This document shows positions 3,001 through 59,573 of a stretch of 64,000 nt of DNA, piece by piece. The translations under genes were made by a program, and so were the position numbers. The stretch is taken from positions 8,122,001 through 8,186,000 of the forward strand of contig OZ176055.1 in assembly GCA_964247055.1 (NCBI GenBank), in the 5' to 3' direction. Origin of the DNA: Paragordius varius (Eukaryota > Animalia > Nematomorpha). Position 1 is the first letter of the stretch. Each line of letters starts with the position of its first letter. The notes beneath the pieces are model-generated. The model was not told the origin of the DNA, made no database searches, and saw only the letters and a program-made list of their open reading frames with translations.

Positions 3001-5074
3001 GTACTTTGTGAGTTTAAATCAAGGGGTAAACGATATCTTTTTGCCAAACACAATTGAAGTGACTAATAGACCAATAGAATCAATAACAGAAAAGGAGGTA
3101 GAATCTATTTGTTAGAAATGCCAAACAACAAGGCTGTAGGCTTGGACGACATAAATATATATTGTTGGAAAGTGCTTGGAAACGCTGGATTAAATTTCTT
3201 GGAGCGTGTATTTAATAAAGTTGTTTCCATTTATGAAATTCCGGTTGAATGGAAGGAAAGTTTAACTGTGCCTTTATTTAAAGGAAAAGGTGATATAAAT
3301 GAATGTAGTAATTATAGAGGGATAAAACTAATGTCGCACACCATGAATTTGTTTGAAAAAATAATTGAAAAACGAATCAGGAAAATGATATATATATAGA
3401 AAGAAATCAATTTGATTTCATGGCATGAAAGCCATAGACATGCGGTAAAAAAGTATATAAATAGCATTAATTTTTATTTTCTTTATGAATTTTGAAACTG
3501 TACCGGTTCCTAATTTGATATTTGGTTTAAAAGTTATATAACAAGTGGGTGTTGCACAAAAACGTTTTAAATCTAACTCTGGTTTCAAAAATTAAATTAT
3601 GAAACAAAAATCGGTCGGGAAAACTTTAGAACATTTTCCATAAAATAGAAATTCTAGCATCAGTACATAGGCAAAAAAACAGAGCATTTATAAGTTTTTT
3701 ATTTATTTAATCGTTTGTTTTAATATATATTTTGTCCTCGACTTTTGTTTAGCATTGTCCGAACGGTTATATGACACTTGAAAGCTTTAACGAAATACTT
3801 AATTCAATCTTTCCAATCGGAGGTAATTTATTTAGAACATATGAATAGATGCTTCAAGATACGCAAAATATTTTTATTGTTGCTTTGACCTGCATAATAA
3901 TGGTTTGGTGGAATTTAAAGTATAACATAATATTTTTTAACATTATGCACAAATCATTCATTCCTTAGTCATTCGTAGAAACTTTATCCAAATTAAATTT
4001 TGGTACGACCCACGAAAAGGCCCAAATAATTTATAAAATGTATGACCCTTTGGGCCGTGGATACATTGATAAAAAATCGCTTCAGAACATTTTAAATAGC
4101 GTGTATGAATTGGCTGATATAAATTTGGAATCTAAGAAGGAAGTGGTTTCTCAAAAAGCCGATCTAATTTTGATGAAAGTATGATAATATATATTTTTTA
4201 TGAATATATATATACATATTTCGATTTATATATATATATATATATACATATTTCAATTTGTATCATGATTGGTAAAATCGCTTCTTAGAGTGAATTATAT
4301 ATAAATCCTATATATTATTTACTTCATTTTTATATAATGTAAATTATTACGTCAAAATTTTCCATAATATATTGAGTACAGCCATACCACTTTTCTATTA
4401 TTTGATCTAATCGTGTAAAAAAGCACAAAAAGTCCTAACAGTGGTATATTATACGGAAAAAAATGTTATCATACGTTTTTGATACCAAGTAAAAGGCATC
4501 CTAATATTTTAATAGCTTAACCTAAGATAACATTATCACATTAAATTGACCCTGAATATTACATATATCCACTTTCATTCACAATAAAAATAAATTTTGT
4601 ATTTCTGTGCTAGATAAATTATTGGGATTAATATTTTTCCATTAGTTTGGTTAATTATTATTTTTTAAAAAAATGCCAATTAATTTGTTTATATTAATTT
4701 TCTCGGACGGGCGGCATTTTCAAAATATATTAGCATTAAGTAATCTACAAGATTTCAAACACAAAGAAAACATATTATTTTCGCCAAAATTTGGAATAAA
4801 TTATTTAGAAAATTTGTTTGAAACGCGGGCTGCAAAATAAATTCAAGGGTCGTTGGACACCAATGATTCTACAATCTAGTCTGGAAAATTATTCAAAAAA
4901 GTGAATTAAACAAACTAATAAAGTGTGAGTTTTTTTAGCTCAGAGACAAATATCTTTAGGGTTGAAAGAAATATCTATGGTATATCACATATTTTTTACA
5001 CATAGGCTTGCCGTGAAAATAAATCAAAGCGAATAACATTGGAAGAATTTCAACACCTACTGGTAAATGAATGA
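11..5074 (+). CDS. KChIP/neuronal calcium sensor (recoverin-family) EF-hand protein, 5'-partial (upstream exons outside window)
   Basis: Exons 11-65, 3753-3822, 3849-3919, 3969-4178, 5006-5074 join in frame with GT-AG ends. They translate as DSQFHPKELKYMYRMFKQ-HCPNGYMTLESFNEILNSIFPIG-DASRYAKYFYCCFDLHNNGLVEFK-SFVETLSKLNFGTTHEKAQIIYKMYDPLGRGYIDKKSL...-ACRENKSKRITLEEFQHLLVNE*. This parallels KChIP (KELQ.LYRGFK.ECPSG...FP.GDASTYAH..F...FD). Exact orthologue uncertain. Confidence 0.8.
279..1422 (-). mobile_element. Decayed full-length mariner (Mos1/mauritiana-like) DNA transposon in an intron of the KChIP-like gene
   Basis: Imperfect TIRs TCAGGTGTAGTTACAAG (279-) and GACTACACCTGT (-1422) are flanked by TA. 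Minus-strand frameshifted remnants resemble mariner transposase: LRHASLFFHQKKKAKSHR, WVSHNLNERQ, DLAPSD, EEQHFNNYE, LDQWFAPK, EWVKCV. Confidence 0.85.
1483..2900 (-). mobile_element. 5'-truncated RTE-clade LINE (reverse transcriptase 3' half, degenerate) with (TAA)n tail
   Basis: ORF fragments include IPVEWKESLTVPLFK, GNQFGFKPGK, LMYPDDIIIL (YADD-like) and LRWFGHIERK...GKRGRRRSKTKWID (typical RTE C-terminus). (ATT)6 at 1483-1500 is a (TAA) tail on the minus strand. Stops and frameshifts occur throughout. Confidence 0.9.
2905..3445 (+). mobile_element. Second RTE LINE fragment in opposite orientation
   Basis: The translation reads ILKRWKEYF...EMPNNKAVGLDDI...IPVEWKESLTVPLFKGKGDINECSNYRGIKLMSHTMNLFEKIIEKR. 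This is the region just upstream of and at the start of an RTE RT domain. Confidence 0.9.
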
Positions 5075-5923
5075 ATAGAGCGTAAGGCCCACCAATCTTT
5101 TTTAAAAAAATTTTTTTTTCATGCTTTTACTGTGATATATATTATATATTAACTTCAAAAACCAATTAATTAGTAAATTATTTATAATAATTGAAACACA
5201 TCTATGACATTGTATTATATATATATATATATATGTAATAATTAATTATGCTTTTCCCACAAAACTTTTTAGCAAAATTAATTACAAATCTTATATAAAT
5301 AAATGCATATATTATATTAATATAAATGCATGATAAAGGACCATGTACAATACCACATAGTATAATCATATAATTAAATAAAATGCAAATGTTGAAAAAA
5401 AAATTCCAAAAATTCTAAAAATATCACAAACATTACATGAAGATTCTAGTTTTAGAGATACGATAAAACAGCTTGATTATATATGATTAAAATAATCTAA
5501 TATAAAAATATAATTTGTAAATGCAGTGTATATAGTGAATAAAATGCTTAAAAATTGATCTGATCAATATTATGGCTAAAATGAAGGTAAGATAATAATA
5601 AAAAAATACTTGATATTAATATTATAGATTCCGTTTTCGATGGATATAGTAAATTTAAAATTATCCAGACAAAACACTTAATGACAAATATTTTCATAAA
5701 ACTTATACATAACTAATCAGTTTGCGTGGTAAATAGAGGGAATAAAGAAAATTGTTGATACACCAATTTAATTTTAAATTGTAACTGTATAGTTTGTGCA
5801 GTAGGATATTTTATTTCAAAAATATTTTGCCTTTTAGTTTTTTACGCTTTATCTGTATAAGTTCAATTTTTCCTGTAAATATACATATATATAGATGATT
5901 AAAATAACGCATAAAACATCGCT

Positions 5924-11900: not shown

Positions 11901-13186
11901 TTTTGGTTAATGTATTAATTGAAAACCTAATTTGTCTGTATTTTTAAGCAATATAATTAGTGAAAAACAACATTTTTTAAAAAAATATGATTCCAAAAAC
12001 ATAATTTATTGGTAAAAATGATTAAATATTTTAGATTATTTTATTTAACAAAATAGTCATGATGCGGATAAAATATCATCTTTACCATTATAAGCAAACA
12101 GTCTATTGTATATCAAAAAAATTGGAAACAAAAATTAATTGAAAAACTTAATTTAACAAAAATAGTTTAGGTTTACTTGGGAATTTTGGTTGGCTTCTGT
12201 ATTAGAAAGCAGTGCTGAGTCATCAGTAGTTTGAGATTTTATTCTGCCTTTCCAAATTATTCCATACCTTCCCCTTAACATATATATATAAAAAAATATT
12301 ATAAAACGGTACTTTGCAATGAAAAAACATTAAAAAATAATTATCAATAATAAAAAAATGCGAAATTATTTACACCTTATGTGTGATATATTTTTAATGG
12401 TTTTTGCATATCATAAATATATTTTGACAAAAAAATCAAAAATCAAATCGTTTTTACAAACCTGTCTAAAATTTCGATTAATTCGATTCGCGAAAGAACA
12501 TCCGATGAAACAATGTTAAAAGCTTGTTTGGTGGAATTATAAAGATCTTTTTTCAATTTAGCGTGATATCGGGCATACATACATTTAGTAAGAATATATA
12601 CCACGGTTGACAATATAAAAAATGAAATAACTCCAATCGTTATATAAAGTGGTAAATTATGCTTTCGATGTGATGTATCTAGAGGATCCGATTCTAAAAA
12701 AATGGATTCAACGCATAAAAATTACTTGAAAATTTGAGAGTTTTGGTTACGTTTTTAAAGACATATCGATATTTACGATTACAAAAGGTGCCAGAACAAC
12801 AGCAAAAGAGACTTTTAGGGAGTTTGTCATCTTCGACTAAGGAAATGCATTCCTTATTATTACATTGTTGACCGGCTGGGTTAGTCCAGCACCCTATCAA
12901 TTAAACAGTTTTTAATAGTAGTATATAATAATTATAAATAAATAATGTTTAAAATCAAAAAACCTTGTTTAATAATAGATTGATTATTTTTAATATCCCA
13001 CATCGTAAAACAATAATGCTTCCCAACAATGCATTGAACGGTATCAGGATCCAACAAAATTCCCATATCAGATATGTTTTGTCCATTATATATTTGATGA
13101 TATATATCTTTGAAGGCACATAATGTTACATCTTGGGCAAAAATTAAACCAAAACCACAAATAAAAGCAAGGCATATTTGCCGCAT
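5924..13186 (-). CDS. BMPR2: BMP type II receptor Ser/Thr kinase (BMPR2/wishful thinking-like), 12 exons
   Basis: Exons (minus): 13186-12964, 12893-12726, 12693-12462, 12273-12177, 11239-11036, 10573-10486, 10123-9971, 9399-9305, 8721-8571, 7727-7594, 6744-6609, 6258-5924. Signal peptide [17 protein letters not shown]; ectodomain LCAFKD...KQGCW...CCCSGTFCN; [22 protein letters not shown]. Kinase motifs: [68 protein letters not shown]. The exon-2 donor could alternatively be 12776. Confidence 0.9.
7433..7590. repeat. Short palindromic element of ~20-bp repeats (AAAGCAACATTTTTTCA...), second copy at ~9565-9700
   Basis: Direct repeats of AAAAGCAACATTTTTT are followed by their reverse complements (AAAAATTGTTGCTTTT). 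A similar cluster lies in another BMPR2 intron. Confidence 0.55.
8344..8513. mobile_element. Hairpin element (~65-bp inverted arms) with a hammerhead-like motif in the loop; probably Penelope-like-element derived
   Basis: Arms 8344-8409 and 8450-8513 are near-perfect reverse complements (AAGATTCGT.TTAACGTCGTGAATAATGAAAGA...AAATAAATTTATTATAGA). Confidence 0.7.
8424..8457 (+). ncRNA. Minimal hammerhead ribozyme-like motif (PLE-type variant)
   Basis: The sequence is ACTC-CTGATGA-T-GCC-ATTG-GGC-GAA-AATT-T-GAGT. It has stem I ACTC/GAGT, the core, a 3-bp stem II and a palindromic stem III (AAATTT). There is an extra U after the core and a weak UUU cleavage triplet. Confidence 0.55.
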
Positions 13187-16335: not shown

Positions 16336-19300
16336 ATGTCGCGGAGTTTTTTCTTTAATACTCAAAAAGCTTTAGCTCGTTCTATTGCTACGAATGTAGA
16401 AAATTTGGAGGAAGTTTTTATTTTTATAAATTATGATAGGTTAAAAAATTGTTAGAGTTTTGTCCATATTACAATGAAGGCTCTAATAATTGTGATATAA
16501 CAATCAATTCTCATTATGCGCTAGTGGCGTTATCAATATATTTTTTGGATTCCAATCTTAAAGTTTATATATTATCAGTAATGATTGTAGTGCAAAACGG
16601 AAATAATTGAATATTTAAAATCTTTGATCCGTAGGATACCAAATGCGGCATGGTCGACTGAATTTTACAAATATTCCAAATATCGCATACCACTTTCCGA
16701 AGAGTTTGCATTTTGTTTGGGATCTCTCCTCAACGAAATTGATATAAGGGATGAAATGATTGAAGGAGAAGTTTTTTTCATTTACATTATATATGTAGTT
16801 ATTTCTTACATTAATTACAACGCTAAACCAATTAATTGATTCCAGTTACCAATTGATTGAAATAAAAGATGGAAAAATTGATGGTATTTTATCAATCATT
16901 TATTTTATAGAAACGGTTTTACTAATTTATATACCTTTGATTATTGGATTTTTTCGGTCTTTGGGGCAACCAACCTTTTTGCAAGATTATGTTAACATAT
17001 TTTCCGAAATATTTCCATCTTCATTCCCCTACTCCACCATAGTTAATCCGTGTTATTCGAATTTTCAGGATGCATTTAAGCTAGGTAACTTTTACTTATC
17101 TTATTTTTGGATGATTATTGATATTGATTATATTTTTTACGCTTAATATAATTCAAGTTTAATTTTGAAAAGTTTATTTATCATTTTTATCATGTGTTTA
17201 TATTTAAGGCTTTGAATGATATTAGTTTATTTTTATTAATATATTTTTTTTGATCTGTTCATTTTGTTTTAGGTAAACAGTCAAGGAAATCGGTACTTTT
17301 CAGTTCAATGTCAGGCGTCGGACCTCTAAGAAATCATAATTTACAGCAAAACAATTTGAGTATTGCAGAAAATAATTCAGATGCATTTTTTTTCGGTAAT
17401 AATATGCATATGACATTTACGCAATATGTGGAATATATGTATCCCACACGAAAGGATGAATTAACCCGACCCGTATATCGTGAAAAGGAATGTGCCACAA
17501 AATTTTTAACACTAGTAAAATATTAATTTTAATATTGTTGGAGTTTTATATATGAAAGAAATTTCGATTATTATTATATGAGAACTGTCTGAAATATTTG
17601 GATATACAGTTGAATTTTTTTGGTTTATTTAAGCTTAATTTCTTGAGATTTGACCTTGATATAAAATTGTACTAGTTTGAAATTTTTAATACAGTAAAAA
17701 TGATATTAAAAAGACACGTAATCATAAAAAACAATTTAAAACATACATTCTTTAAACCCTCATTTTTTGGTGTATAGTTTTAGTTTTCTAAAAATAGAGT
17801 TGTAAATTGTAACACTCCTAATTGTTAATTCACTACTGCAATTTACATAGAAATCAAATGTGTTTTCTTTATAATAATATATTAATCTTTATTTTTTTAC
17901 GTTTTTTCTTATATTTATTTTTTCATGAAAAGACAATTTTTACATTTTGGTTATTTTAAAATACAGTGTCATTTCAAGTTGCATCTAAAATGTTATTAAT
18001 TTTACAGGTTAAACGCATGTTAAATCGAGACTTATTACTAGCCCTAGACAATAAAACTACCAGTTTTAGCAATGTAAGTAAATTGGATCCTATATATCTA
18101 TTTTTTATACCATTTATACCTCAATTTCTCCCTTGAACAACAATTCAAATTAACTCTAAAGTAAATCTTACATTTTTGATAATTTAAAAAATTTCTTAAA
18201 TTTTAAAAAATGAAATTTTTTTCAAGATTTAATATATATTGAAAAAAAAATATCAGCCATAAAGAAAAACAATCTATATTAATAATGATTTATATTAGTT
18301 CGAAAATACATAATTTAATTTTAGGGTGAATTTGAATTGTTTGAGGGTGAATTTGAGGTGCAAATGGTATGTTTTATTTTATAATATATTTTTTTATTTT
18401 GCCATTATTGTAAAATTAATTTTTATGTTTAATTCGATAGACTATTCATTATTCCTACTTTTATACATCCTACAAAGAGGTCATAACATACGTCAATCTA
18501 AGTTTTGCATTCAACCTTGTCCAAAACATTAAGGGTAAATTTTATTCTATTTTTTTTGTGAGTTAATCTTTCTATTAAATTTTCCTTAATGTTCCTAAGT
18601 TTATTGTGCAACAAAATTTTTGAACTATTTTCTTCCAAAATCGGGGGTTGTTTATGAACTCTTTTAAGGTAGAAACAACAAACAATATCATTAAAAGTTA
18701 TGCAAAATAAATTATAGGTATTTAATATTTAAGAAATATTATATATAGTTTTATTTAATATATTTTCATTATTATTGAATCGTATAAATACCAATTGGTT
18801 AAAATTTCTCACATGAAATATATCTGATAGATCCTAGCCCTGACATTAAAGACGATATCTATCGATTTGTCCAATCAATTTTCTTGAGCTTACAAGCCGA
18901 CCTATATAAATTTACACATCATGGTACTTTGCTACACCTTATTCAACAACAATACGCACATAATACGCATCATTCAACCAAAATGAAAGATAATACTAAA
19001 AACACCAATTATAACGGCAACAATGAAAAACATTTAAATAACTTTGTTACAACAAATTTGCAAAGAAATAGTTTTTCAACTTTGTTTGGTGGCAGTAATA
19101 TGCTGATGACAAGCCATAAAAATATAACACATTGGAAATTTGACTTGTGTGTTAAATCAAATGCCCTTTGTATTGAAATACTGATTTGGGCCGTGAATAG
19201 ATCGGAATGTATGTGTGTGTGCCTTTTTTTATTTTCCTACTAAAATATTTGGATTGATATAAGATTTTTTGCTTTTAAAAAAAACCCATTTTATGAAAAG

Positions 19301-37300: not shown

Positions 37301-37313
37301 ATGGCACTTTCTT

Positions 37314-37371
<58 letters not shown>

Positions 37372-40300: not shown

Positions 40301-43300
40301 ATCCTCCGGTTAGTGTGTTTGGTAAACTATATAATTTTGAAAAAATCTGAGAATTTCAAGGGTTTTTCATGAGGTATTTGCAATTTTTTGGCAATAGTTT
40401 TGGTTAAATTTGGCATATGGTAAAATTATATGAACGCTTCTACCATTCCTCCTACGGTAGCTCTAACGTTTTTATGTACGCGAATTTTCCCATACCATCC
40501 GCTTGTCGTACAATTTGCCATAAAAATATTGGAATCATATCCTCCGGTGAGTGTGTTTCGTAAATTTTAATCTTGAAAAAAATTTGAAATTTGATGTTTT
40601 TCATGAGGTATTTGCAGTTTTTTGGCTATAGTTTTGGTTAAATTTGGTATATAATAAAATTATATAAACGCTTCTATCATTTCTCCTACGGTAGCTTTAA
40701 CGTTTTTATGTACGCGAATATTCCCATACCATCCGCTGGTCGTACAATTTGCCATAAAAATATTGGAATCATATCCTCTGGTGAGCGTGATGTTTGATAA
40801 TTAAAGATTTTTATGAAAATTTTGACTTTTTATGAGAATTTTAAGGGTTTTTAGAATAATAGTTTTGGTGAATTAAATTTGGAATAGGGTATAATAATGT
40901 TTTCATGTACTTTTTTACCATACCCACTAGTTTTACAATTTAATAAAAATTTTGGAATCTCATCCCCCAGTAATTATGTTAAATTTTATAGAATATTTAT
41001 GAGGTTTTATTTGAGTTTTTGATATTTTAATGAGGTTATTAAAGGTTTTTAGGATTATTTGTTTTGGTAAATTAAATTGATTATTATGAATGATTCAACC
41101 ATCCCTCTACTGTAACCTTACGTTTTTATGTACTCCAATTTTCCCATATCATTCGCGTTGTACAATCTTCTATAAAAAATTGGAATCTTACCCACCAGTA
41201 AGTGTTTTTGGTAAACTATACTATTAAAATTTTTGAGGTTTGATGTTTTGATTAGCATTGGGGGGAGGGGTATTTTTATGGTTTTGATAAATTAACATTG
41301 GAGTAAACTTTAATTATATGGATGCTTCTATCATTCCCCCTATCGTAGCTTTAACGTTTTTTATGTACGCGAATTTTCCCATATCATCCACTGATCGTAC
41401 AATTTGCCATAAAAATATAGAAATCATATTCCCCGATATGTAAGTTTAATGAATTTTAAATAAGATTTATGAGAGGTTTGATGGTTTTAATATAAAGTGT
41501 AAAATTAGGTGTGTCACCAATTTTGTTTTATATTCATTTTTTCGAAACTGAGATGATAGGGTATAGTTAAAATGGTTTTTATTTTAAAATATATATTTAT
41601 TAAGAACATATTTTAAATAGTTTTTAATTTATATAACGTGTTGGGTTATGAAATAAGTAATAGTAACGTGCTCAATACTTTACAATCGTAATCCTTTAAG
41701 TATAATAGAAAAAAGGAAACATTTTAAAATTTTCCCATCTATATATGAATATATCGATATTAGGAGGTTTTAATCTTTTACATCCCGCAATTGGTACAAG
41801 CTGTGCGCTATGATTCAATCGGTTATGTTAGCCAATTTTTGGTTGCCATGGGGATAAAATCTCAATTACAAGCACATCAGCTGATTTGGAACATGAAAAC
41901 TAACCAGTACATGGATGAGGAAGGCAAAATTAAAGATGGTATAACTTATATACTATTTTAGTTTTTTACATTGATAAAAGAATGTTTTTTTAAATTTTAA
42001 CAAGTTAACAGGTTAAATATAAAATTATAAGGCTTAACTTATATTTTTAAAAATAATGAAATTTATGTACATTTAAATTCTGTTTGATCAGGTAAAAATA
42101 TTTGACTATTTCCATGCGTACATCTTTTCCATCATAAAATATTTAATTTAACCATATACAAGCATATTTTAAATCTTATATTGTCCATTTATGTAGAAGC
42201 CCTTTACGATAAACTTGAAATGATTATGGCACAAATGACGAATCATTTTTCACCCGAAGCTCGGGCTTTTTACAATCGTGAATTCAATTTTTTTAAACAA
42301 GTATATTTCTACTTTTCAGTTCAAAATAAATTTCATTTTTGATTAACAGTATTCTAATATAATGATAAAATGGTTTATATGTTAAATTTAATCTTTATTA
42401 TAGTTTACGTTTATATGGAATAAAAAATTATTTCTATTTTAGATTTTTTTAAGGTTTATATTTTAACTGCATCGTTTGTAACCATCAAAAAATTAAAATT
42501 TCATTGTTTTGGTTAAGTTTTCTCGTACCCTAAACGAGCATTTTATTACTTAAAATAAGGTTTTTTAATAAATTACGATTATATTATTTGGTATTTCTTT
42601 TATAACTAATTTAATATAATTATTTTAAAGTTTTGTTTAAATATTGTAGATCACGAATGTAAGTGCAATCATAAGACCTTACCCCAAAGGGAAAGCTAGA
42701 AAAGAGGCTTGTTTAAAAGCGCTCAAGAAAATAAAAACTAAAGCTGGTTGTTATTTACCCTCAAATCCGGAAGCCTATATAATAGATATTGATTATGCAT
42801 CGGCTAATCCTATGCAGAGGTATACCAGGAAATATATTTAATTAATTACTTTTGATATATGTCTAATAGACATATAGAAATATAAATATTTATTATTTCC
42901 TCATGATATTGGCAAAATTGGAGTTGTATTTTTTATAAATAATATTGAATGAAAATTATATATATAAATTTTAATATTTTACCCGTCACCACAAGTATAT
43001 CCAGCTTTTATGCGCTATGCAAAAATATTTTAGTGATATTGATTTTATACTAACATGTAATTGATCACTTCTCCCTTAGATAAATTCGATTGTGGAAATA
43101 ATATTTCCTCGTTATGACCTACTTTTTTGTTGAGAAAACAAATTTATTTTAAAGTGTATCAACATCCGTTTTTTTCAATAATATTAAAAATATTAATAAA
43201 CTCAAAAATTTATTAAATTTTATTTTTACTCACTTTTGACTCATTATAAGGGCTCAAAATAGCCACAAGGTTTTTTTAACCTAAAAAACAGGTCCTACAG

Positions 43301-46300
43301 ATCAGAAAAATGCAGGATGAACGGCATAAGCTCTTTAATAAGTAAAAGGCTTTGTTTGAAAAAAACTTATAGTATACGGATTTTACTATCGAAGAATTAA
43401 TTAAAGTTTTCTATCAAAATTAATTTTTTTCATCTTACATGTAGTGCTGCAAAAGCACCCTACTTAGCCCGTTTCAAGGTCCAAAAATGTGGCATAAATG
43501 AATTGGAAAAACTTGCTATCGAATGTTCAGCCAGTGACATTGCTTTAAATTCATCTCACCAGCAACCAAGGAAAAGTTTTGATGATATAGACCTTTTAGC
43601 CCTACGGAAAGAACAATCTAAAAATACGACAGAAACAAACAATAATTTGATGACAATGTTAAATGATGGCCGAAGGCGTTCAAAATCTATTTCCTCTGAG
43701 AGTGGAAAAGACGACTTGGATGATATGGCTTCCAATGAATCTTTTTGTAACTTATTTTACAGTTTTTATGTGGATGTTGGATTTTTTGTGATTTAGCAAT
43801 AGCTAAAAATTATAAGTAAAAAATAATATCCTAATAAAAATATCGTTGTTGGGCTATGGTGGCATTCTTCAGTAAATAAGTGATCATATTAGCTTTTTAA
43901 TAAGTGTGCGATTGCGGCATCATTGAGGTTTAAATTGCAAGTAGTTAATTGATTTTGTTTTCAAAATATATTTATATACCCAGTCTTTAAAGGGTCGAAT
44001 ACTTTTCTTGTTGTTTTAGAGATATACTTAAGTATTTATTGGTGATTTTCTTGAGATAGTTGGTGCTTATGATTACTGAATCGTAGACGATTTTAAATTT
44101 TTGGAAAATGTATTTTTCAAAAATATTTTACAGGGAGTTAATTTTAATGTAATCTCAAATTTTTATATAAAATGTCATCTTATTATATGTTTTATTTCTA
44201 GCTAACGAAGATGAAGATGATATGGAAAAAGTAATTAGTATAGTTACCTATTTTACTATTTTCCAAATTTCAACAAATATTATATATACCATTTACAGTT
44301 TAAATTCACCCTTGAACAATTCAAATTCACCCTAAATAACAATTATGTGTTTTCAAACTAATATAACTAATTATTGATATAAATATATCTTTATGGCATA
44401 GTTTATTATTTTTTCAGTGTATTATTTTAATTTTTAAACAAAATTTTATTTGTAAAAAATATATTAAAATATAGGTAGGAATTTTTAATTTTACAAAACA
44501 CATAATTTATTTGAGGGTAAATCTGAATTGTTCAAGGGTGAATTTGAACTGTTTAAGGGTGAATTCAAATTGTTTAAGGGTAAATTTGATTTGTTCGAGG
44601 GTGAATTTGAATTGTTTAAGGGCGAATCTGAATTGTTCGGGGTGAATTTGAATTTTTAAAGGGTGATTTCGAATTGTTTGAGGGTGAATTTGAATTCTTA
44701 AAGGGTGAATTTGAATTGTAAATGGTATATCGAAAATTTTTTTAAATAAAATTGTACATTAACTTATTAGAGTTCACCCGTTAATACAAAAGGCAAAACT
44801 AATGTTAAATCTTCACGAAATGCACGACACAAAAAAGGTGGAGCATTTAAAAGTAATAAAAGACGCTCCCTACCTCCATTGTTACCGGCCTCGTCAGCTT
44901 TCCCAGTTTATTGGCAGGCTGCCATCTTTAAAGTTGGTGATGATGTTAGACAGGTTACGTTTTTTGCACACACAAATAATTAACGGTTTAGGGGGAAGGG
45001 GGGGGGTTTGTATAAATTTTTATTCACACTTCATTACATATGAAATTTTCTCCTATATATGTTAATAATACATTTTGCTAATTTTTTCTTCAAAGGGTAT
45101 TTATAATTGTAAGAAATATATACATCAAGTGTTTTGGGTTAAAATATGATTATTCAACATATTCAAAAGCATGTTTTATGTATACGTCTAAAACGAAAGA
45201 TTTTGAACCAATCAGCAGATTTTTAAGTCAGTATTTAATTTAAAAAATCAGGCCAAATTATAACTTAATTTTTAGCACAATATTTTAAATTAAAAACAAA
45301 TTAAAAATTATGTGGCATAAAGCGAGTATTATAAATTTTAAAGTGCGAGTTTCTAGGAGTTGGATAACTTTTTTGTAAACCTAAAATTTATAAGAAAGAG
45401 TACAAAAAACAATAATTTTTTACACTTCATATTATAGGGTGTCTTAACCTTGCAAATTATAACATTGTTGTTTAAGAGATTGCGTTTCCGTGGGTTTAAA
45501 CTTACTACATTTGTTTGTATTTTCACAAGGTGTTTCTAATATATTAACCAACATATATTTTAGGGAAATATAATACAAACTAATTTGATTTTCCTTATAT
45601 TTTAGCTCTAAAGTTAATATTTTCCTTCCCTTAAAAATTAAAATATAAAAGTCGCCTTATTATTTTTTCATAGGATATGTTAGCTTTGCAAATCATTACA
45701 CTATTTAAGAATGTTTGCGTTTCCGGGGCTTTAGACTTACTACATTTTTTTGAATCTTCATAAGGATGTTTTAATATTTAATCAACATATATTTTGGATA
45801 ATATAAAACAAATCTAATTTGTCCCTCACTATATTTTAACTCTAAAGAATCAAAATATCAATATTGCTTTATGAATATTATTTCTCATAGGATATGTTAG
45901 CTCTGCAAATCATAACACTATTTAAGAATGTTTGCGTTTCCGCTGGTCTTGACCTATTCCTTTACCCATACCGCGTAGTGGCCACCGATAGTGGGTCCGG
46001 GGTTATAGAATGCGTGCCAGACTCAAAAAGTCGAGATCAATTAGGTCGACAAACTGATATTGGTCTTTACGAATATTTCCTGAAAAAGTATGGGGATGAA
46101 TCCTCAGTTCCATATCAAAAGGTAGGTAAGGTTCAAAAAATGATTTTTTTACAATGAATTTAAAATTGTCCGTTTTTTGGTTTTATGTCATATAATTTTT
46201 TAGAGCAAAAATGTGGGTTTTGTTTTACAGTTATTGTAAAAAGTGATGAAAATGGAGTTTTTTGAAATCCTAATTGGGGAACAGGGTAAGGTTAAAGTTG

Positions 46301-48360
46301 AACGTTTGACTTGGTAACTTACCCAAAATTTTTCTTGTAGAAATTATTAAAACGTTGCAAATATCGGACTTAGATATAATATATTAAGATTATCGCCTGA
46401 TACAGGAAAAAGTACAAAATGTTTTAATCCATATATTGTGCAATTAATTTCAAACTTACCTATATCATTTATTTATTTTTATCTCCTTTGATTAAAAGTA
46501 TGATAAAATTTAAATTAATTGCTACAGTATTAATGATTTCAAAAAAATTTCGAACTTAACATATTTTTGTTTTATAGGCACGTCAAAATTTTATCAAAAG
46601 TATGGCCGGTTACAGCGTAATGTTATTCCTCCTTCAAATCAAGGATCGACATAATGGAAACATTATGATTGATTCTGCTGGGCATATTATCCATATTGGT
46701 GAGAGCTTTTTTATACACGTATAGTCTAGATAAAATGTTTTTTACTTAAACAATGTTGCATATTGAATGTTAATTGGAAATAATTTATTTAAATACAATT
46801 ACAATTTTTCCAAATATTTATGACAAAGTTTTTATCGTTGTTTCCCAAAAAGACGAAATTTAAACAAACAAAAAACTACTTTAATAATTGGGACACGCAT
46901 ATACTCATAAAATGTAAGATGTTTTTCTTTGATAAATCGGCAGTATATGCTTTAATATAAACAAGTATCGAAATGGCTGCTAAATCTTAAAAAGTATATA
47001 TTAAAATTAATTTGACTTTTTGGTAATAATATAAAGGTGAAAACTTTTTGGACGGTATTTTAATAAATTTCATATTTTTTACGTGGCAAATAAATTTAAT
47101 TATTAATGCGGTTTACATTCTATCAAAAGCATGATTATTTGAAAAAAAAGAAATATGCGATTTATGGGCACAATAATTTAGTTTTTGCAAAATAATAATT
47201 GAAGATTTTTTGAAAAGATAAATATATTAACTCCTAAAAGTTAGTTTGATGAAAAATGGCGATTCTATATAATTTATTCATATTGTAGATTTCGGTTTTT
47301 TGTTCGAAAGCTCACCCGGTGGAAATTTAGGTTTTGAACCGGACATAAAATTAACCGATGAAATGGTTATGATTATGGGCGGAAAAATGGAGGCTAACGG
47401 ATTTCAATGGTTCACGGAATTGTGTGTAAAAGGATATTTAGCATTAAGGTAAAACGCGGTTTAATGAAATTTTTTAAAATTTTAAACAATAAGAGATTAT
47501 TGCTCAACATTGTGAGTAAATCTACATTGCTGGATTTTACAGTTAAAAAATGCCATAATGTTTACAGTTAATAGAATAAATGGTAAATTTATAAAGAGAA
47601 AAGTATATTGTCAATGAGACTATATATTTCAAAACTCTAAATTTTAAAAGGCAATATTTAATTCAAAACAATGTATTTTTAAACATATTGTTGTTGCAAA
47701 ATCTGACAGTTTCACCTAATTACTACCGTGATGTTTGCCGTCAACATTAAGTTTTTATTTAACATTTATTTAAAAAAAGACGTTTTAAAACAATCCATAT
47801 GGAAAAATTTAATGGCTTGAAATATTGAGCCAATTTTAAAAATGACGACCAAATTTACCATAATTATTGCGAAAACATCTACCCCGCAAAATTCTCAGAG
47901 GCTGAAACCAAAATGGGTCTCATAAAAATTAGGAAAATAGACAAGTTTTGCGTTTTTTGTTAAAAATTATAATTGGATATTTCAAATTTCAAAAAAATCC
48001 ATATTATAATTTTAATATAATCCATGTTTTATAAATTAAATATTGTCAATAATACAATAAGAAATATTTATATAAACCGACATTCGCTTTGAAAATACGC
48101 TTTCTATGTTATGGTATTAAATTTAAATATCTAGGCCATATGAAGAGGATATCGTCACGTTAGTGTCACTCATGTTGGACACTCGATTCCCATGTTTTAG
48201 GGGACAAACTATAAAGCTTTTACGATCCAGATTTTCAGCGAATTTTTCGGAAAAGGAAGCAGCCCAATTTATGATTGGAGTAATACATAGATCATATTTA
48301 AATTATCGCACACGTGCTTACGATTTATTGCAATATTATCAAAATCAAATTCCATATTAA
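16336..48360 (+). CDS. PI4KA: Phosphatidylinositol 4-kinase alpha (PI4KIIIalpha), ~52 exons
   Basis: Hand-spliced exons: 16336-16413, 16440-16562, 16591-16770, 16799-16883, 16911-17084, 17273-17514, 18008-18073, 18441-18534, 18831-19208, 19643-19743, 19841-19957, 20395-20573, 20849-20944, 21847-21957, 22492-22594, 23003-23118, 23268-23404, 23682-23764, 24116-24377, 25257-25576, 26148-26278, 27055-27160, 27269-27402, 27634-27759, 28214-28448, 29370-29490, 30342-30437, 30775-30872, 31191-31298, 32271-32418, 32875-33002, 33913-34083, 34493-34644, 35012-35169, 35502-35605, 35944-36032, 36372-36473, 37003-37136, 37400-37443, 37506-37622, 38347-38528, 39341-39608, 41764-41938, 42197-42300, 42650-42819, 43445-43746, 44202-44230, 44771-44953, 45891-46121, 46578-46698, 47289-47448, 48135-48360. 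Motifs: [66 protein letters not shown]-terminus QYYQNQIPY*. Confidence 0.95.
18106..18370. mobile_element. MITE family A copy (TATACCATTT termini, 20-21-bp subterminal repeats)
   Basis: TATACCATTT... and ...GGGTGAATTTGAATTG...AAATGGTAT, with an interior shared with other copies. Confidence 0.7.
21405..21680. mobile_element. MITE family A, partial copy
   Basis: AACAATTCAAATTCACCCT ... GGGTGAATTT repeats ... TGTAAATGGTATA. Confidence 0.7.
24392..24843. mobile_element. MITE family A copy with expanded left repeat array
   Basis: TATACCATTTACA followed by about 9 units of (GAACAATTCAAATTCACCCTT)-like sequence. The right end is GGGTGAATTTGAACTGTAAATGGTATA. Confidence 0.85.
26504..26881. mobile_element. 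MITE family A copy
   Basis: TATACCATTTACAGTTCAAATTCACCC ... GGGTGAATTTGAACTGTAAATGGTATA. Confidence 0.85.
28405..28715 (+). repeat. ~137-bp tandem duplication (2 full + 1 partial units) spanning a PI4KA exon end and donor
   Basis: AAACTATGT...AAATCWTTATATATGGTATACTACCTTTTT occurs at ~28405 and ~28541, with a partial unit at ~28682. Confidence 0.75.
29068..29338. mobile_element. MITE family A, degraded copy
   Basis: TATACCATTTAAAATTCAAATTCAC..., family interior, and a remnant GGGTGAATTTT. Confidence 0.65.
30010..30332. mobile_element. MITE family A copy
   Basis: TATACCATTTACAGTTTAAATTCACCC ... GAATTATAAACGGTATA, ending <10 bp from the acceptor at 30341. Confidence 0.8.
31377..31533. repeat. 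Palindromic MITE-like element, related copy at ~37905-38055
   Basis: GTTGTTGCTTATTTCACATTATAGTAGGACAATTTGCAACAC ... GTGTTGCAAATCGCCCTACTATAGTTTGAAATAAGTAACAAC. Confidence 0.7.
33237..33875. mobile_element. MITE family A2: same TATACCATTT termini as family A but a different 21-bp subterminal repeat
   Basis: TATACCATTTGCA...(GGTCCTTGAACACTTCAAGTT)n ... (AACTTGAAGTGTTCAAGGACC)n...TGCAAATGGTATA. Confidence 0.8.
36642..36982. mobile_element. MITE family A copy
   Basis: TATACCATTTACAGTTTAAATTTACCC and a right-hand GGGTGAATTT repeat array ending ~20 bp from the acceptor at 37002. Confidence 0.8.
39498..41445 (+). repeat. Tandem array (~235-bp period, ~9 units) of the last 111 nt of PI4KA exon 39341-39608 plus its splice donor
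   Basis: Coding-like units start at 39498 (true exon), 39723, 39958, 40198, 40436 and 40670. Degenerate units lie at ~40905, ~41090 and ~41323. Each intact unit ends CCG/CTG-GT(G/T)AG. Confidence 0.95.
44285..44729. mobile_element. MITE family A copy with expanded right repeat array
   Basis: TATACCATTTACAGTTTAAATTCACCC ... about 9 GGGTGAATTTGAATTGTT units ... TGTAAATGGTATA. Confidence 0.85.
45430..45945 (+). repeat. Tandem triplication (~220-235 bp) of a PI4KA intron end, acceptor and catalytic-domain exon start
   Basis: CATAG|GATATGTTAGCT(T/C)TGCAAATCAT(T/A)ACACTATTTAAGAATGTTTGCGTTTCCG occurs at 45674 and 45891. A decayed unit lies at ~45439. Confidence 0.85.
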
Positions 48361-48471
48361 TAGAATAAATTATTTATCCCTATATGCATATGTCTAAGGT
48401 ATTCTAGTTTCTTTAATAGTAGTAGTTCTGTATTCTATCCCACATAATTTCAATACATTCCAACCTATATA

Positions 48472-54285: not shown

Positions 54286-54525
54286 TTCTGGACCTAACCA
54301 TGGTAAAATAAAAAAAAATTATGCATAACTTTATAGACAAAATAATTTCCAAATGCAATTTATTCAAAACCTATTAACTATAAAGGTATAAACAAATCAT
54401 GATAAAAGTTTTTTTTGAAACAATCAAGCCTTTGTAAAACCATTAATTCGCATTTTGGAAATTATGGTTTACATTATACAAATTTTCTTTGGATGAAATG
54501 CACATTTATTTATTTTTTGACATGC

Positions 54526-57105
54526 TTAAGAAATGGTAGATAAATAATCTTTAATTTCATTATTATTTAATCGTTTAAATCCTTTTTGATTACAAACACC
54601 GACTTCAATGTTAGTTTCATTAATTTGGCCCTCAAAATTTTCTTTTAGCGTTAAAATTGCCGTGTGTATAGCATCTTCAAGCTCAATATCTTCATTATAT
54701 CTATCAGAATTTGTAATTTGGTAATATTATTTTACTAATAACAGTTGTTAAAATCCGTAAGATAACGATAAAGGAAAATTTAATAGAATTAAATGAAAGT
54801 ATAAATAGAAATTATAAACGATATGTGAAACCCTTCGTCAATATTAATCGTAGACTAGTTTCGTGCTTGTTAGCACTCATCAGTACGACACAACTATTTG
54901 ACTTGACTTGGGGTTTTCACATATCGATTTCGTATATAAATCCAACTTGGCAATTTTGGTATAAATGCAGTTAGTTATACGAATCTAAATTAAATTTAAT
55001 GGAATTTATGAAAATTAAACTGAAAATTTGAAATATAATTTCTATATATACTTTCATTTAATTCTATTTATTTTTCCTTTATCGTTCGTTATCTTACGAA
55101 TTTTAACAATGTTATTACAAAACATAACCAATCCGTTATATACCATTACAAAATATTATTTTACGAATTAATAATTCAAACAATTGCCGAAGTATGATTA
55201 AATTTAAAAATAAAATTCAGTGAAATCATAGTAATAGGTACAAAAGTTTTATAATGTAACCGATTAAATTGCAAAAAATAAAATATATATAAAATAAAAT
55301 TAATGTAAAACAAGCGTAAACACCCCTTAAAATTACCCAAAATCATATTACAAAAATTATTAATAGAATTAAATTATATGTAAAAATACTCACCCAAATC
55401 ACATTAAAAAACTTGAATATTCAAAAAAAACGCAAATATTATTAAAATGTTGAATAAGGTTAAAAAATTGAAAAATATCAGTAACCTTTTTTCAAGAAAC
55501 GTTCTACCATTAATACAATTCTTTCCTAAAGCCGTGGCTTTCCATGCAAAATATGCTCCCTAAAGACACATAGAAAATTTTAATAATATAAAACTTATTG
55601 AATGCAATATATAAATGATTTAAATATCTATGTTATTTCTACTATAAAAATATTTAAATAAGATGACTTTTAACACTATTAGTTGTTCGCACAAAGAGCG
55701 TGCAATAATTCAATATTATTAAAATGATTTCATTTGTTTACAATTTTTGCAACTTTAATTATATTCATAAAGAAACTTTTTGCATTTTAAAATCAAATAT
55801 AATTCTCAATACTTTTTATCACAAATAAGAATTGAGATTTTATATGAATAAATCTCCGTAATTTTTTTAATAGGTTTGACTAAATAATTTAGTAAAGTTT
55901 AATTGTATTTTATTTGTCGTACCGAAGGATCACATTGATATAGAAATGGTTTATTTAAATCATCATCCCATCCAGCGATAAGTAAGGAGACTCCAAAAGG
56001 ACGTACACCTCTATCATAAAAAGTTAATGTTAAAAATCATATTTTTTAAATATATAATTACCAGATTTAAATGTTTAAAGTTTAATATAAAATTAAAAAA
56101 AGTCATAAATACAAATCATTAAAAGACAACATTTTTTGATCTTTTAATATCTTCAAAATAAATTATGTGATTCCATGTGTGAATATAGAAATGAGTGTGC
56201 TAGCAATTTAAATCTCTATTTCTTATTGCGCAAACCAAATCAATAGGTTATTGGTTGAGAAATTAATATTTAAAAAATATACTTTTTTAATCAAAATAAA
56301 TATAATTTTGTACTCAATCATACGATTTGTTTTATATATTCATCTTTTTACTGTAACTTTCGAATTCCCTACCCAGATTGAGTATAATTTTGGACAACGG
56401 CAGCAATTTTTTGAACCAATTGATTGGGTGACACATTTTCGCCATAAACAAGTTGATAATTTTGAGCTATTCTCCGACCCTCTTTAACCAATAACCTTTA
56501 AAAGGAATTATATAATTTTAATTCCGCAATTTAGTTTATTACTTTTTAAAATATTTTGTGATAAATAATTAAGTGAGTAAAAAACGCTTTAAAATATATA
56601 GAATTTTAACTTGATCATTCTATAATTAGACCAGAACATGTTTATATAAATATTTATTATTTCCAAATAAAAATTATGGAGAGTGAAAGCCCGCTTTCGC
56701 TGATTTTTCACGCAAAAGTTCATTTACATTTTTATGCCGATCAAAAAATATATAATCCGAAATTAATGTAATTTTTGTGAAGTAATTAAAAAATGATTTT
56801 TAACCTAAAATCAGGACCTAAGCCACTGTAAGTCATCCCACAATTTGCGGATAGAGCTTCAACTTTTCTTACGCTTGACTCATCGTACAAAGGGGATTTA
56901 AACTTTTTTTCAGAAGCAATAACAACTCCATTTTTGGCTTAAAATATTAAAACATAAATACGAACCTTTAATCCCGAGAGAAGGTGCTCCCGCAGCCACT
57001 GCCGCTAAAGCATACTCAATCTGAACCAGTTTTCCTGAAGGACTATTAGTTAAAATAAAAGTTCAACCTAAAAGTTGTCAAAGAAAATGAATATTTTTCA
57101 CTCAT
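54526..57105 (-). CDS. PSMA2: Proteasome subunit alpha type-2, 7 exons, 235 aa
   Basis: Exons (minus): 57105-57068, 57042-56966, 56937-56805, 56495-56373, 56010-55923, 55559-55486, 54700-54526, totalling 708 nt. Translation: [44 protein letters not shown]...[20 protein letters not shown]...[17 protein letters not shown]...[25 protein letters not shown]. Confidence 0.97.
54737..55116. mobile_element. Nested-hairpin element (~80-bp outer arms, 15-bp inner arms) carrying a hammerhead ribozyme; probably Penelope-like-element derived
   Basis: Outer arms 54737-54816 / 55034-55116 are near reverse complements. Inner arms are CGATATGTGAAACCC 54819-54833 / GGGTTTTCACATATCG 54911-54926. Confidence 0.75.
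54848..54888 (-). ncRNA. Minimal type I hammerhead ribozyme (PLE type, palindromic stem III)
   Basis: The minus strand reads TCGTA-CTGATGA-GTGCT-AACA-AGCAC-GAA-ACTAGT-C-TACGA. It has a 5-bp stem I, an exact CUGAUGA/GAAA core, a 5-bp stem II and a self-complementary ACUAGU. The GUC cleavage triplet places the cut after 54853. Confidence 0.88.
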
Positions 57106-57191
57106 GATGGTTTATGAGTCGAGCGTGACCGAATATATAAAAGTTTTGGCAGATGCCTTGATCAGCAAATCCACTGATTTACAAATAATAT
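57106..57191. promoter_or_regulatory. Probable shared bidirectional promoter between PSMA2 and the beta-trefoil gene
   Basis: Only 86 bp separate the two divergent ATGs (57105 minus, 57192 plus). No transcript data are available. Confidence 0.55.
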
Positions 57192-59573
57192 ATGGCAAAG
57201 GAAAGATTATCTTCCATTCAAATAAATACTCCCAGTGCACCTCCACCTTATGAGCACGCTATTAATCAGCTTAACGAAGTTGCTGGTCCTATCGAAACGA
57301 GAACCTGTGTGGTATGATTTTCTAGTTTTATATTATTGATTAGAGGAAAAATTCCAGTGAAAAAAATCGAAACTCTATCGGTGGCCTTATGTCTGATGTA
57401 ATTGGTGCTAGTGTACATAAAATTAAAGAGTCTGGTATGTTTATTTAATAATTATAGGAAAATATCTTTCCAGCAAAGAGCATAAATATTTGGAAACGGG
57501 TAATGTAGTTCAATTGATCTCCAAAAAATCTGGTCATTCCCTTCAAATTTTACAAACGCCCCAAGGTCACTTACTCCTGGATGGATCTGGAAAAGAAGGA
57601 CCGTCTGCGTTTAACAGTATTGCAGTTTTTTTTATAATTTTATAAATACTTTAATAAATTTTTAAGCCATATATTTTTGAATATGCCTTTTAAAGTATTA
57701 CGTGTTATCTATTTTTTAATAAATACTATGTGTAATGCCATTTATAAATTTAAACCTATCATTCCATTCCGATAATACATTTTGAAGGACGTCCTCGTAA
57801 TAAAAATAAATGATGAAACTTTTCTTTAGATATATTTTGGCTTTAACAGCATTATGATTTACAAATTGTTATTAATATTAATATTTTTTAGTGAATAGAA
57901 GAGAAATTAACACTACCTATCATAAAATAAAATTTTTTCTTTTTTCACCAAAACGAACTATCATATCTACGCTTTTTTTAAATAATTATCACCCAGAATT
58001 TTGTCACTTACACGCAGTTTTTAGCTCATAGGTATCAAAAAGTTAAAAAGTTATACAAAATTAACTTACGCTTTTGATCATTTGCTAAGATCAAATAACA
58101 GAATGATTTACTGTGGAGTACATATGTTTTCTAAATTATTTTATTATTAATTCCAGTTTTTGAAAAACAAAATTTTCATATCGGAGATATAACATTTAAT
58201 TTTGAGATGACATATAATTAATCTAATTATAAATTACTTTTATTTTATTTTTATGTGTTTGTGTTTTAGGCCTATTTACTGTTTATAAAGACCCATCTTC
58301 ACGCATAACCCTTCACAATCATTTCAATTATTTGGCCATCATGAATGGTGTCCTTACATTATTACAAGGGGTACTTTATTTTTTTTGTGATTTTAAATTT
58401 ATAAATTATGTGAAAAAATATTTTTTGTTTAATTATTATGTTCATTGATTTCAGTATATTGTATGCGAATATGATTTTTTAATTTTGGTTCCATGCTTGG
58501 CAAATTTTAATTACATAATTTTATAATAATATTTTATGATAATTAACCTAGGTTTAGTGTTTAAGGGAGCTTAATTTTTTTATGCCCATCCATTGTTTAA
58601 TATGCGCTATTTTCTAATTAAATAACTTTATTAGTATATAACCAGAATTTAGTGTTAACATAAGCGGTCTGATTGGTTTTTATTGTTGGGTTAAAATTCC
58701 GACATTATCGTTTTGTTTTTCTATAACCAATCTTTAGTTCAATAAATTTATGAATTAAAACCACTTTTAAAAAAAAATTATAAAAATAAATTTAAATTGA
58801 AAGCCGCAATTATTACATATGTTATAATAAAACTATCCATATTTGGATATTTATATTATATATATATATATATATATATACATTTTTTGCTATAAAATCA
58901 TATCAGCCTTTTAAAATTTAGTCCTTAATGTTTTAGTGTTTGTGATTCACGATTAGGGAACACATCTAAAACCTTCAAAATATTTCTTTTTTTTTCGCAG
59001 TTTAATCAATCATGATTGATATATATTTTATGTATATATATATATATATATTATATATATACCATTTACAGTTCAAATTTACCCTTGAACAATTCAGATT
59101 CACCCCCGAACAATTCAAATTCACCCTAAACTATGTGTTTTTGAACAAATATAACTCAATATTAATATAAAATATATCTTTATGGGGCGTAATTTATTAT
59201 TTTTCAGTTTTATTTTAATTTAAAACAAAATTTATATTTTATTACCTATATTAAAATATAGGTAATTTTTTATCTTAAAAAACATGTTTTTTATTTAAGG
59301 GTGAATTTGAACTGTTCCCAAGGGTGAATTTGAATTGTTTAAGGATGATTTTGAACTGTATATGGTATATATTAGGCCCAAACTGGACCAATTGAGCAAT
59401 GCTTTTTCAACGTGAGAGAAGTGATTGGAACAAATGGAAATTACATAACGCTAGAATCGGCCAAAGAACCTGGTCGTTATGTGGCTGTCACATCCTCAGG
59501 GAAAATTAAATCACCAATTACCACATCATACGCCGATCCTGAAACGCATTTTGCCCTGCGGTTACTGGTATAA
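57192..59573 (+). CDS. Leaderless beta-trefoil protein (IL-1/FGF/fascin-like fold) with N-terminal PSAPPPY motif, ~222 aa
   Basis: Exons 57192-57311, 57344-57434, 57458-57616, 58270-58370, 59376-59573 (669 nt, open). Three trefoil-like repeats: VVQLISKKSGHSLQI, RITLHNHFNYLAI, YITLESAKEPGRYVAVTSSG. The last resembles the FESxxxPGxY motif of IL-1/FGF/AbfB trefoils. An alternative last exon from 59674 is possible. Confidence 0.7.
59058..59369. mobile_element. MITE family A copy abutting the acceptor at 59375
   Basis: TATACCATTTACAGTTCAAATTTACCC ... GAACTGTATATGGTATATATTAG|exon. Confidence 0.8.

Follow-up and report, generated by a model that had tools for sequence, protein, structure and literature searches.

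Very short, AT-rich introns, probably spliceosomal, at the 5' ends of genes in a repeat-rich, hairworm-like genome

Introduction

Introns of ciliates measure about 25 nt in Paramecium and 15-16 nt in Stentor, and those of nucleomorphs are also short. Among animals, introns below 30 bp are stated only for myxobolids and Dicyema, both with compact genomes, in a study that also cites ciliates and Stentor and names no hairworm in its main text (PMC13644364, September 2026). In Dicyema japonicum and the myxobolid myxozoans nearly all introns are short, with a median of 22-27 bp, and repeats are few (PMC13644364). The microintrons of flatworms (tapeworms; Opisthorchis felineus) show length peaks at 37 and 90 bp (summarised in PMC7716572).

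The window analysed here, the whole stretch of 64,000 nucleotides, belongs to a genome of 110.6 Mb with 25% G+C, a hairworm-type mitogenome and repeats at depths of 1e5-2e6. A preliminary description of the window had reported ten ultra-short GT-AG introns in five genes and had considered such sizes to be known mainly from ciliates, nucleomorphs and dicyemids, a list from which the myxobolid myxozoans were missing (PMC13644364). The sequence and homology evidence presented below suggests, with a probability of roughly 0.88, that these segments are genuine U2-type GT-AG spliceosomal introns forming a very short, AT-rich class that is clustered at the 5' ends of genes beside long introns.

As in Dicyema and the myxobolids, the hosts are parasitic, GT-AG introns below 30 nt occupy conserved positions between conserved exons, the 5' splice signal is reduced to approximately GTa, and the U2 snRNA is canonical. 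Unlike in those animals, the short introns are a 5'-proximal minority in a genome which is not compact and carries high-copy repeats: the approximately 40 introns in the window range from 23 to ~1,900 nt, most of them being 240-940 nt long, with a median of ~350 nt. The phylum also differs, going by the mitogenome. With flatworm microintrons (PMC7716572) the locus shares parasitic worm hosts, genomes that are not compact, and short introns that lie beside kb-sized ones, are clustered in the gene and are found mostly at its start; it differs in phylum and in having its mode at 26-28 nt with no peak near 36-37 nt. The size range is that of ciliate and nucleomorph introns, which however belong to protist genomes with unimodally short introns.

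Ten candidate short introns

All ten segments were present with the coordinates and lengths first described, and each starts with GT and ends with AG on its strand when read directly from the sequence; given the composition of this sequence, GT and AG at two fixed ends are expected by chance at ~0.0015 per junction. In coordinate order the lengths are 26, 32, 26, 28, 28, 27, 28, 25, 32 and 23 nt, so that eight of the ten measure 23-28 nt as read (mode 26-28 nt, minimum ~23 nt). G+C makes up 12.8% of the interiors; the flanking exons have 34.8% (z = 6.8) and the long introns 21.7%. The intron class is extremely AT-rich and mostly in the 20s of nucleotides.

The size of an intron was considered fixed where just one GT-AG solution was workable, where homology was exact to the residue, or where both applied. 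For six of the ten, whose sizes are fixed, removal of the segment restored the conserved frame without gain or loss of a residue; the fit is exact to the residue in the NCS-family gene and at PSMA2 intron 2, and good to a few profile positions in PI4KA. The remaining four sizes are not fixed: at three junctions an intron is required with more than one possible size, and the fourth segment (16884-16910) is not forced. The initial view that most of the introns are forced applies to the six, and its count of five genes to NCS, PI4KA and PSMA2, with an intron of unforced size in each of the other two genes. The features are as follows.

3823..3848, plus strand: 26-nt GT-AG intron of an NCS-family EF-hand gene, phase 1, splitting an Asp codon; size fixed
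3920..3968, plus strand: next intron of the NCS-family gene, 49 nt, read from the sequence, with an EF-hand in the downstream exon
12694..12725, minus strand: 32-nt candidate intron of a TGF-beta type II receptor-like kinase gene, between the ectodomain and transmembrane exons; size not fixed
12894..12963, minus strand: first intron of the same receptor-like gene, 70 nt (alternatively 88 nt)
16336..48357, plus strand: PI4KA gene, four short 5' introns followed by longer ones
16414..16439, plus strand: PI4KA intron 1, 26 nt; size fixed
16563..16590, plus strand: PI4KA intron 2, 28 nt; size fixed
16771..16798, plus strand: PI4KA intron 3, 28 nt; size fixed
16884..16910, plus strand: PI4KA candidate intron 4, 27 nt, in frame; not forced
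54529..57105, minus strand: PSMA2 gene, introns of 25, 28, 309, 362, 363 and ~785 nt
56938..56965, minus strand: PSMA2 intron 2, 28 nt; size fixed
57043..57067, minus strand: PSMA2 intron 1, 25 nt; size fixed
57192..59570, plus strand: gene E, weakly FGF-like beta-trefoil, introns of 32, 23, ~653 and ~1,003 nt
57312..57343, plus strand: gene E intron 1, 32 nt (or 35 nt, 57309-57343)
57435..57457, plus strand: gene E candidate intron 2, 23 nt; size not fixed

Homology at the junctions

Exons were searched singly and not as a joined protein, and most of the short exons had no match in Pfam. Word searches with exon 3 of PI4KA and exon 3 of PSMA2 also gave no match, full-length relatives being removed by the length filter. 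In PSMA2, intron 2 is placed to the exact residue: exon 2 corresponds to human PSMA2 residues 15-39 and residues 2-44 of exon 3 to human residues 42-84, so that the first residue of exon 3 is 41 and the split codon is 40, the protein being contiguous at 39/40/41 in agreement with the Pfam coordinates. Intron 1 is the unique GT-AG solution at its junction. Exon 2 enters the Proteasome_A_N signature (23 positions) at position 10, and exon 1 with the split codon supplies the nine residues preceding that position; this was read from the sequence, exon 1 being too short for a search, and a solved-structure search with the exon 1 fragment found nothing.

The 26-nt segment of the NCS-family gene is the sole frame-keeping GT-AG solution, and its retention would introduce an internal stop. 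In alignments with neurocalcin and hippocalcin, exon 1 corresponds to residues 38-59 and exon 2 to 61-83; the split codon is residue 60, making the junction residue-exact at 59/60/61. The gene had been named KChIP, which is too narrow, as NCS-1, neurocalcin, hippocalcin and KChIP are alike among its best matches.

The exon map of PI4KA was obtained from an orthologue profile, built from 58 orthologues, and tblastn; exons 1-3 abut in the profile, although the N-terminal matches to it are weak, with E-values that apply to a search of six sequences only. By extrapolation exon 1 reaches about profile position 41, and the start of exon 2 lies at 44; the 26-nt intron 1 between them is the unique GT-AG solution. 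Extrapolated likewise, exon 2 reaches about position 89 and exon 3 starts at about 90, with a 13-nt solution as the sole rival to the 28-nt intron 2. At intron 3, also a unique solution, exons 3 and 4 meet in the profile to within ~3 positions, and exon 3 matches human PI4KA residues 96-150. Solved-structure searches with exons 1, 2 and 4-5 returned nothing useful. The top PI4KA matches by name were ticks, mites, tunicates and sharks, and carry no taxonomic signal.

On this evidence the six introns in NCS, PI4KA and PSMA2 are well supported as ultra-short introns that would be of the U2 type. The 27-nt segment of PI4KA is probably an intron as well: the profile places an 8-residue insertion over it, adjoining another insertion of 11 residues, and its interior has 9% G+C.

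The remaining three junctions allow several sizes. In the receptor-like gene a frame switch is needed between two ORFs upstream of the kinase exons. Seven GT-AG solutions, 32-104 nt long, would keep the frame, and one of them is the 83-nt alternative already given in the preliminary description. At the first junction of gene E there are only two solutions (32 and 35 nt), retention leads to an internal stop, and the interior has 14% G+C; at the second, eight GT-AG solutions of 20-68 nt exist, and the best sites among them (GTATGT...TATAG) are those of the 23-nt solution, which has 5% G+C. Homology searches found no homologue of gene E spanning either of these junctions, and a solved-structure search with its exon 3 gave nothing useful.

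These multiple solutions, together with the stop-free 27-nt segment and the presence of 49-71-nt introns in the genome, are what would be seen if only the six homology-fixed introns were ultra-short and some of the other four were different, the 27-nt segment being coding and the receptor and gene E junctions using longer sites (35-104 nt). Against this, splice sites look best and G+C is lowest in the short solutions, and these lie in the same 5'-proximal place as the verified short introns of PSMA2, PI4KA and the CCT genes; we regard such a restriction to six as improbable.

DNA and RNA sequencing support

DNA contigs from a second study (X3) span 56918-57119 and 57304-57469, are identical to the window and hold the four segments of PSMA2 and gene E unchanged. 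In the DNA runs X1 and X3 the segments are covered as deeply as the surrounding sequence, and they are not skipped by any joint or contig. The polymorphism is intron-like: in a second allele, present in X1 at half depth, PSMA2 exon 2 has three third-position changes, all synonymous, the 28-nt segment has a 2-nt deletion and two substitutions, and the 25-nt segment has a single substitution. Genome-wide searches recovered a single PSMA2-like locus, the one in the window, and neither a paralogue nor a second copy of gene E.

Indels from sequencing or assembly, or decaying pseudogenes in which nothing is spliced, are a very improbable source of the segments. No point in favour of this was found, and it is largely refuted. 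Where contigs of the second study give coverage (PSMA2 and gene E), they are identical to the window and the segments are not indels; the GT-AG ends in ten of ten segments, the exclusively synonymous polymorphism in PSMA2 exon 2 and the single-copy state of both genes also speak against it. Removal of the segments from somatic DNA rather than from RNA, as by ciliate IES-like or other programmed DNA elimination, deserves equally little credence, since the size range is similar to that of Paramecium IES but the ends are GT...AG and not TA...TA, and the DNA of X1 and X3 keeps the segments at neighbourhood depth without a skipping joint.

RNA-labelled runs under the same species label yielded no reads on the stretch (X4) or two contigs only, both diverged (X6). 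The X6 contigs are spliced and hence RNA-derived, and they come from a diverged relative. One (record 17) joins PSMA2 exons 2 and 3 as modelled, the only one of the short junctions to be crossed, and the other (record 18) matches the junction of exons 3 and 4 of gene E.

Genome context and snRNAs

The short introns are clustered at the 5' end (PI4KA introns 1-4, PSMA2 introns 1-2, gene E introns 1-2 and receptor introns 1-2), with introns of about 100-2,000 nt further downstream in these genes. PI4KA has at least 17 inferred downstream introns of 108-937 nt plus several larger ones. CCT genes, selected by a Pfam search blind to introns, have introns of 26, 28 and 36 nt and of 57-71 nt at the 5' end of the domain, followed by ~35 downstream introns of 220-1,300 nt, with the same pattern in four CCT genes.

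Some of the long introns carry high-copy repeats, namely at 54671-55183 in the last PSMA2 intron and at 58946-59458 in gene E. The long introns had been called TE-filled, which is borne out as far as very high-copy repeats in two of them are concerned, but no transposase or reverse-transcriptase ORFs were seen inside the PI4KA introns.

The suggested check of the snRNAs showed the pairing motifs of U1, U2 and U6 to be present and canonical: U1 (124 bits) has ACUUACCUG intact, U2 (178 bits) GUAGUA and U6 (114 bits) ACAGAGA. A U12 snRNA was not found in the genome, from which its absence does not follow.

Splicing and the effect of retention

The first three bases of the short introns are GTA in five and GTT in five, and among 17 inferred long PI4KA introns ~11 begin with GTA and 5 with GTT. 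Both classes show only GTW, and the idea of a stronger 5' splice site in the long than in the short introns was dropped. In the interiors, which are 87% A+T, A-containing motifs lie 8-16 nt upstream of the AG, as chance predicts at such a composition, and no branch point can be named. We infer that the ordinary major spliceosome would excise the segments from pre-mRNA through intron definition, and that recognition may need little beyond an initial GTW, a terminal WAG and, between them, A/T-rich sequence that offers candidate branch adenosines. The earlier proposal of a spliceosome handling both size regimes is reasonable, with a precedent in flatworm microintrons (PMC7716572).

Retention was said to meet stops, which is the case for nine of the ten segments: five contain an internal stop in frame and four lead to a frameshift stop 13-38 nt downstream, while 16884-16910 reads through stop-free. 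A premature stop would be expected to catch most retention, the same idea of NMD-visible retention as for ciliate and nucleomorph introns. In contrast to those introns, no depletion of multiples of three is demonstrable here (p = 0.10). The argument that nine of ten lengths are not multiples of three, as expected under NMD visibility, was accordingly abandoned as not significant; it was also biased by the way in which the introns had been found, and short introns of 3n length with in-frame stops occur elsewhere in the genome.

Implications

Tentatively, hairworm-like animals could add a third, independent lineage to the animals with introns below 30 nt, and be the first with a 5'-proximal class of them in a repeat-rich, long-intron genome with canonical snRNAs, although we consider this rather doubtful. 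If true, the extreme shortening of introns would be independent of genome compaction, the lower intron limit of the metazoan spliceosome would be separated from genome streamlining, and a system with canonical U1, U2 and U6 would be at hand for studying that limit.

Annotation tools with a minimum intron of 30-40 nt would produce frameshifted or truncated 5' gene ends. Should the reading for hairworms be correct, gene finders blind to such introns could account for part of the reported "loss of universal genes" and of the ~70% BUSCO values in this group. The hairworm genome papers examined leave introns unmentioned, and one of them gives a BUSCO completeness of 71.6%. Since tools miss short introns and these papers are silent on them, the claims of gene loss in the phylum would merit re-checking with a lower minimum intron size.

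The Ten Short Segments and Their Genes

The ten candidate introns of 23-32 nt lie in five genes of the window, which were called by combining six-frame reading with protein family and structure searches:

Exons from 3753, plus strand: NCS-family EF-hand gene; introns of 26, then 49 nt
6607-13198, minus strand: TGF-beta type II receptor-like kinase gene; introns of 70, then 32 nt, then kb-sized
16336-48357, plus strand: PI4KA; four short introns, then at least 17 placed at 108-937 nt and several larger, to about 1.9 kb
54529-57105, minus strand: PSMA2; introns of 25, 28, 309, 362, 363, and about 785 nt
57192-59570, plus strand: gene E, a weakly FGF-like beta-trefoil gene; introns of 32, 23, about 653, and about 1,003 nt
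Outside these five genes, 62094-62747 on the minus strand holds an open frame of 218 codons that matches no Pfam family and has no recorded exact copy.

As the preliminary description had reported, all ten segments are bounded by GT and AG on the strand of their gene and have the lengths given there; the chance of finding GT and AG at two fixed positions in this sequence is about 0.15%. The G+C content of the segment interiors (12.8%, and at most 21% in every one of the ten) was compared with that of the flanking exons (34.8%, z = 6.8) and of the long introns (21.7%). If the segment is kept in the transcript, a stop codon is encountered within it in five of the ten cases and 13-38 nt downstream in another four, and the 27-nt segment at 16884-16910 yields no stop when kept. 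The argument that nine of the ten lengths are not multiples of three did not hold up statistically (p = 0.10), and this count is biased because a stop-free intron with a length divisible by three cannot be spotted in raw sequence.

Precision of the Intron Boundaries

For each segment, every GT-AG pair that would join the open frames on either side and leave no stop was listed.

GT-AG solutions for the short introns
3823-3848 (NCS-family gene), 16414-16439 and 16771-16798 (PI4KA), 57043-57067 (PSMA2): sole solution
16563-16590 (PI4KA): one rival solution, 13 nt
56938-56965 (PSMA2): four solutions, the choice made by homology
57312-57343 (gene E, intron 1): 32 or 35 nt
57435-57457 (gene E, intron 2): eight solutions, 20-68 nt
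12694-12725 (receptor gene): seven solutions, 32-104 nt, the previously named alternative of 83 nt among them

Six of the introns, in the NCS-family gene, PI4KA, and PSMA2, are fixed by these solutions and/or by homology, and the receptor and gene E introns admit several sizes.

Alignment to homologs was used to place the coding sequence on both sides. The first two exons of the NCS-family gene correspond to residues 38-59 and 61-83 of neurocalcin/hippocalcin, with residue 60 encoded by the split codon. In PSMA2, exon 2 corresponds to human residues 15-39 and residues 2-44 of exon 3 to human residues 42-84, from which it follows that the junction at intron 2 reads 39|40|41 with residues neither gained nor lost. 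Within the 23-position alpha-subunit N-terminal signature, exon 2 begins at position 10, and the nine residues preceding it are those of exon 1 and the split codon, which were read from the translation since exon 1 is too short for searching. For PI4KA, 150 relatives were fetched with one large search seeded with a kinase-domain exon, and a profile was constructed from the N-termini of 58 full-length relatives, to which the exons were aligned singly and the matches extrapolated to the exon ends. On this profile exon 1 ends at about 41, exon 2 extends from 44 to about 89, exon 3 from about 90 to 148, and exon 4 starts near 152. In human PI4KA, exon 3 has its match at residues 96-150. Reading through exons 4 and 5 produces an 8-residue insertion over the 27-nt segment, beside another insertion of 11 residues, and this segment (16884-16910) is probably an intron.

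DNA and Transcript Contigs

Contigs of sequencing runs were compared with positions 54500-59600 of the window, covering PSMA2 and gene E. X1 is a DNA run with the same species label, and X3 is a low-depth run from a different study and with a different organism label. Both runs contain the two short segments of each gene, X3 records 11 and 13 are identical to the window over 56918-57119 and 57304-57469, and no contig skipping any of the four was found in X1 or X3. Since the contigs of both runs keep the segments, the four are neither assembly indels, an explanation that the preliminary description had named as a possible refutation, nor removed from the sampled DNA. X3 has the locus at 2-7x depth, and stretches of it are identical to the window. 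The run may represent a host or mixed material, or this very animal filed under a different name.

X1 also contains a second allele at about half the depth. It differs in PSMA2 exon 2 by three changes, all third-position and synonymous. The 28-nt segment shows a deletion of 2 nt besides two substitutions, and the 25-nt segment a single substitution; such a pattern is expected for a selected exon flanked by two freely changing non-coding pieces.

A further run, X6, was guessed to be RNA and yielded two contigs, both from a diverged relative and not from this organism. In the second of these, exons 3 and 4 of gene E are contiguous across the inferred 653-nt intron, which identifies X6 as spliced RNA. 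In the first contig PSMA2 exon 3 runs directly into exon 2, and eight codons before and two after the junction share one frame. The contigs of this relative stop short of the other eight junctions.

Short Introns in CCT and Proteasome Genes

As a sample chosen without regard to introns, CCT chaperonin genes were located in this genome by Pfam search and their 5' parts were cut out. One gene contains a 26-nt intron (C1:9887362-9887387), directly after which the Pfam match restarts at profile position 18; another has introns of 28 and 36 nt, the latter (C2:9804720-9804755) being a multiple of three with an internal stop and corresponding to 12 surplus codons relative to the profile. A third gene has a 57-nt intron (C7 near 1468201-1468257), likewise a multiple of three with an in-frame stop, and a fourth has introns of 71 and about 70 nt. 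The short CCT introns are all situated at the 5' end of the domain; further downstream, about 35 introns measure 220-1,300 nt. A 27-nt intron (C1 near 6948961-6948987), a multiple of three with an in-frame TAA, occurs in a proteasome beta gene. Overall, lengths in the short class range from the low 20s up to about 70 nt, the mode falling in the 20s, and the class is polarised to the 5' ends of genes. The introns of 36, 27, and 57 nt bear on the idea that retention must be NMD-visible and are too few for testing it.

Splice Signals, Repeats and Genome Context

At their 5' splice sites, short introns show only GTW, and so do long ones. In the 17 inferred long PI4KA introns and four long PSMA2 introns these sites are no stronger than in the short class, with GTA or GTT and little beyond, T at +3 being common. 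The 5' splice-site signal is likewise minimal in myxozoans and Dicyema (PMC13644364).

Two very high-copy repeats are located at 54671-55183 in the last PSMA2 intron and at 58946-59458 in the last gene E intron, with a summed X1 contig depth of 1e5-2e6 versus about 1e3 for single-copy DNA. The repeat at 58946-59458 is made up of short units in tandem, which are also present in PI4KA introns, e.g., near 30049-30318, 33183-33909, 36849-37040, and 44510-44758. No transposase or reverse-transcriptase frames were seen within the PI4KA introns, and reverse-transcriptase-like ORFs were read at about 1570-3400. At 39336-40795, the intron after one PI4KA exon contains the tail of that exon (profile about 1424-1462) six times in tandem. 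Some 150 nt before the exon at 45891, part of that exon's start is duplicated (45674-45739).

The assembly comprises 110.6 Mb in 44 contigs with a G+C content of about 25%, and the window is its stretch C6:8122001-8186000. In the mitochondrial contig, C44, there are zero-loop palindromes whose arms measure 131 and 97 nt, an oddity described for Nematomorpha (PMC6649704), and next to cox1 a palindromic unit of 49-52 nt is repeated in tandem (these features lie at L011:53-314, 773-1472, 4064-4257). The mitogenome is of hairworm type.

Comparison With Published Cases and Probable Splicing Route

Among 51 animal genomes, introns below 30 bp were reported only from myxobolids and Dicyema (PMC13644364, September 2026), and no hairworm is named in the main text of that study. 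The word "intron" is absent from the hairworm genome papers compared, and our literature searches returned no report of such short introns in hairworms. In flatworms, short introns that form clusters biased towards the 5' end occur together with kb-sized introns, with length peaks at 37 and 90 bp (PMC7716572). The present case resembles myxobolids and Dicyema in intron size and flatworms in architecture, and joins the two features in a different phylum.

The short introns would most likely be removed by the ordinary major spliceosome through intron definition with minimal signals. The preliminary description had pointed to the snRNAs in this regard, and U1, U2, and U6 are present in the genome in several to many copies with canonical 5' splice-site (U1), branch-site (U2), and ACAGAGA (U6) motifs. 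U12 snRNA was not found in the genome search, which proves nothing about its absence. Among 46 U2 matches genome-wide, a large group of genes and gene fragments is clustered at G000:C3:257000-528000, U1 genes are clustered at G000:C6:565000-633000, and U6 was found twice.
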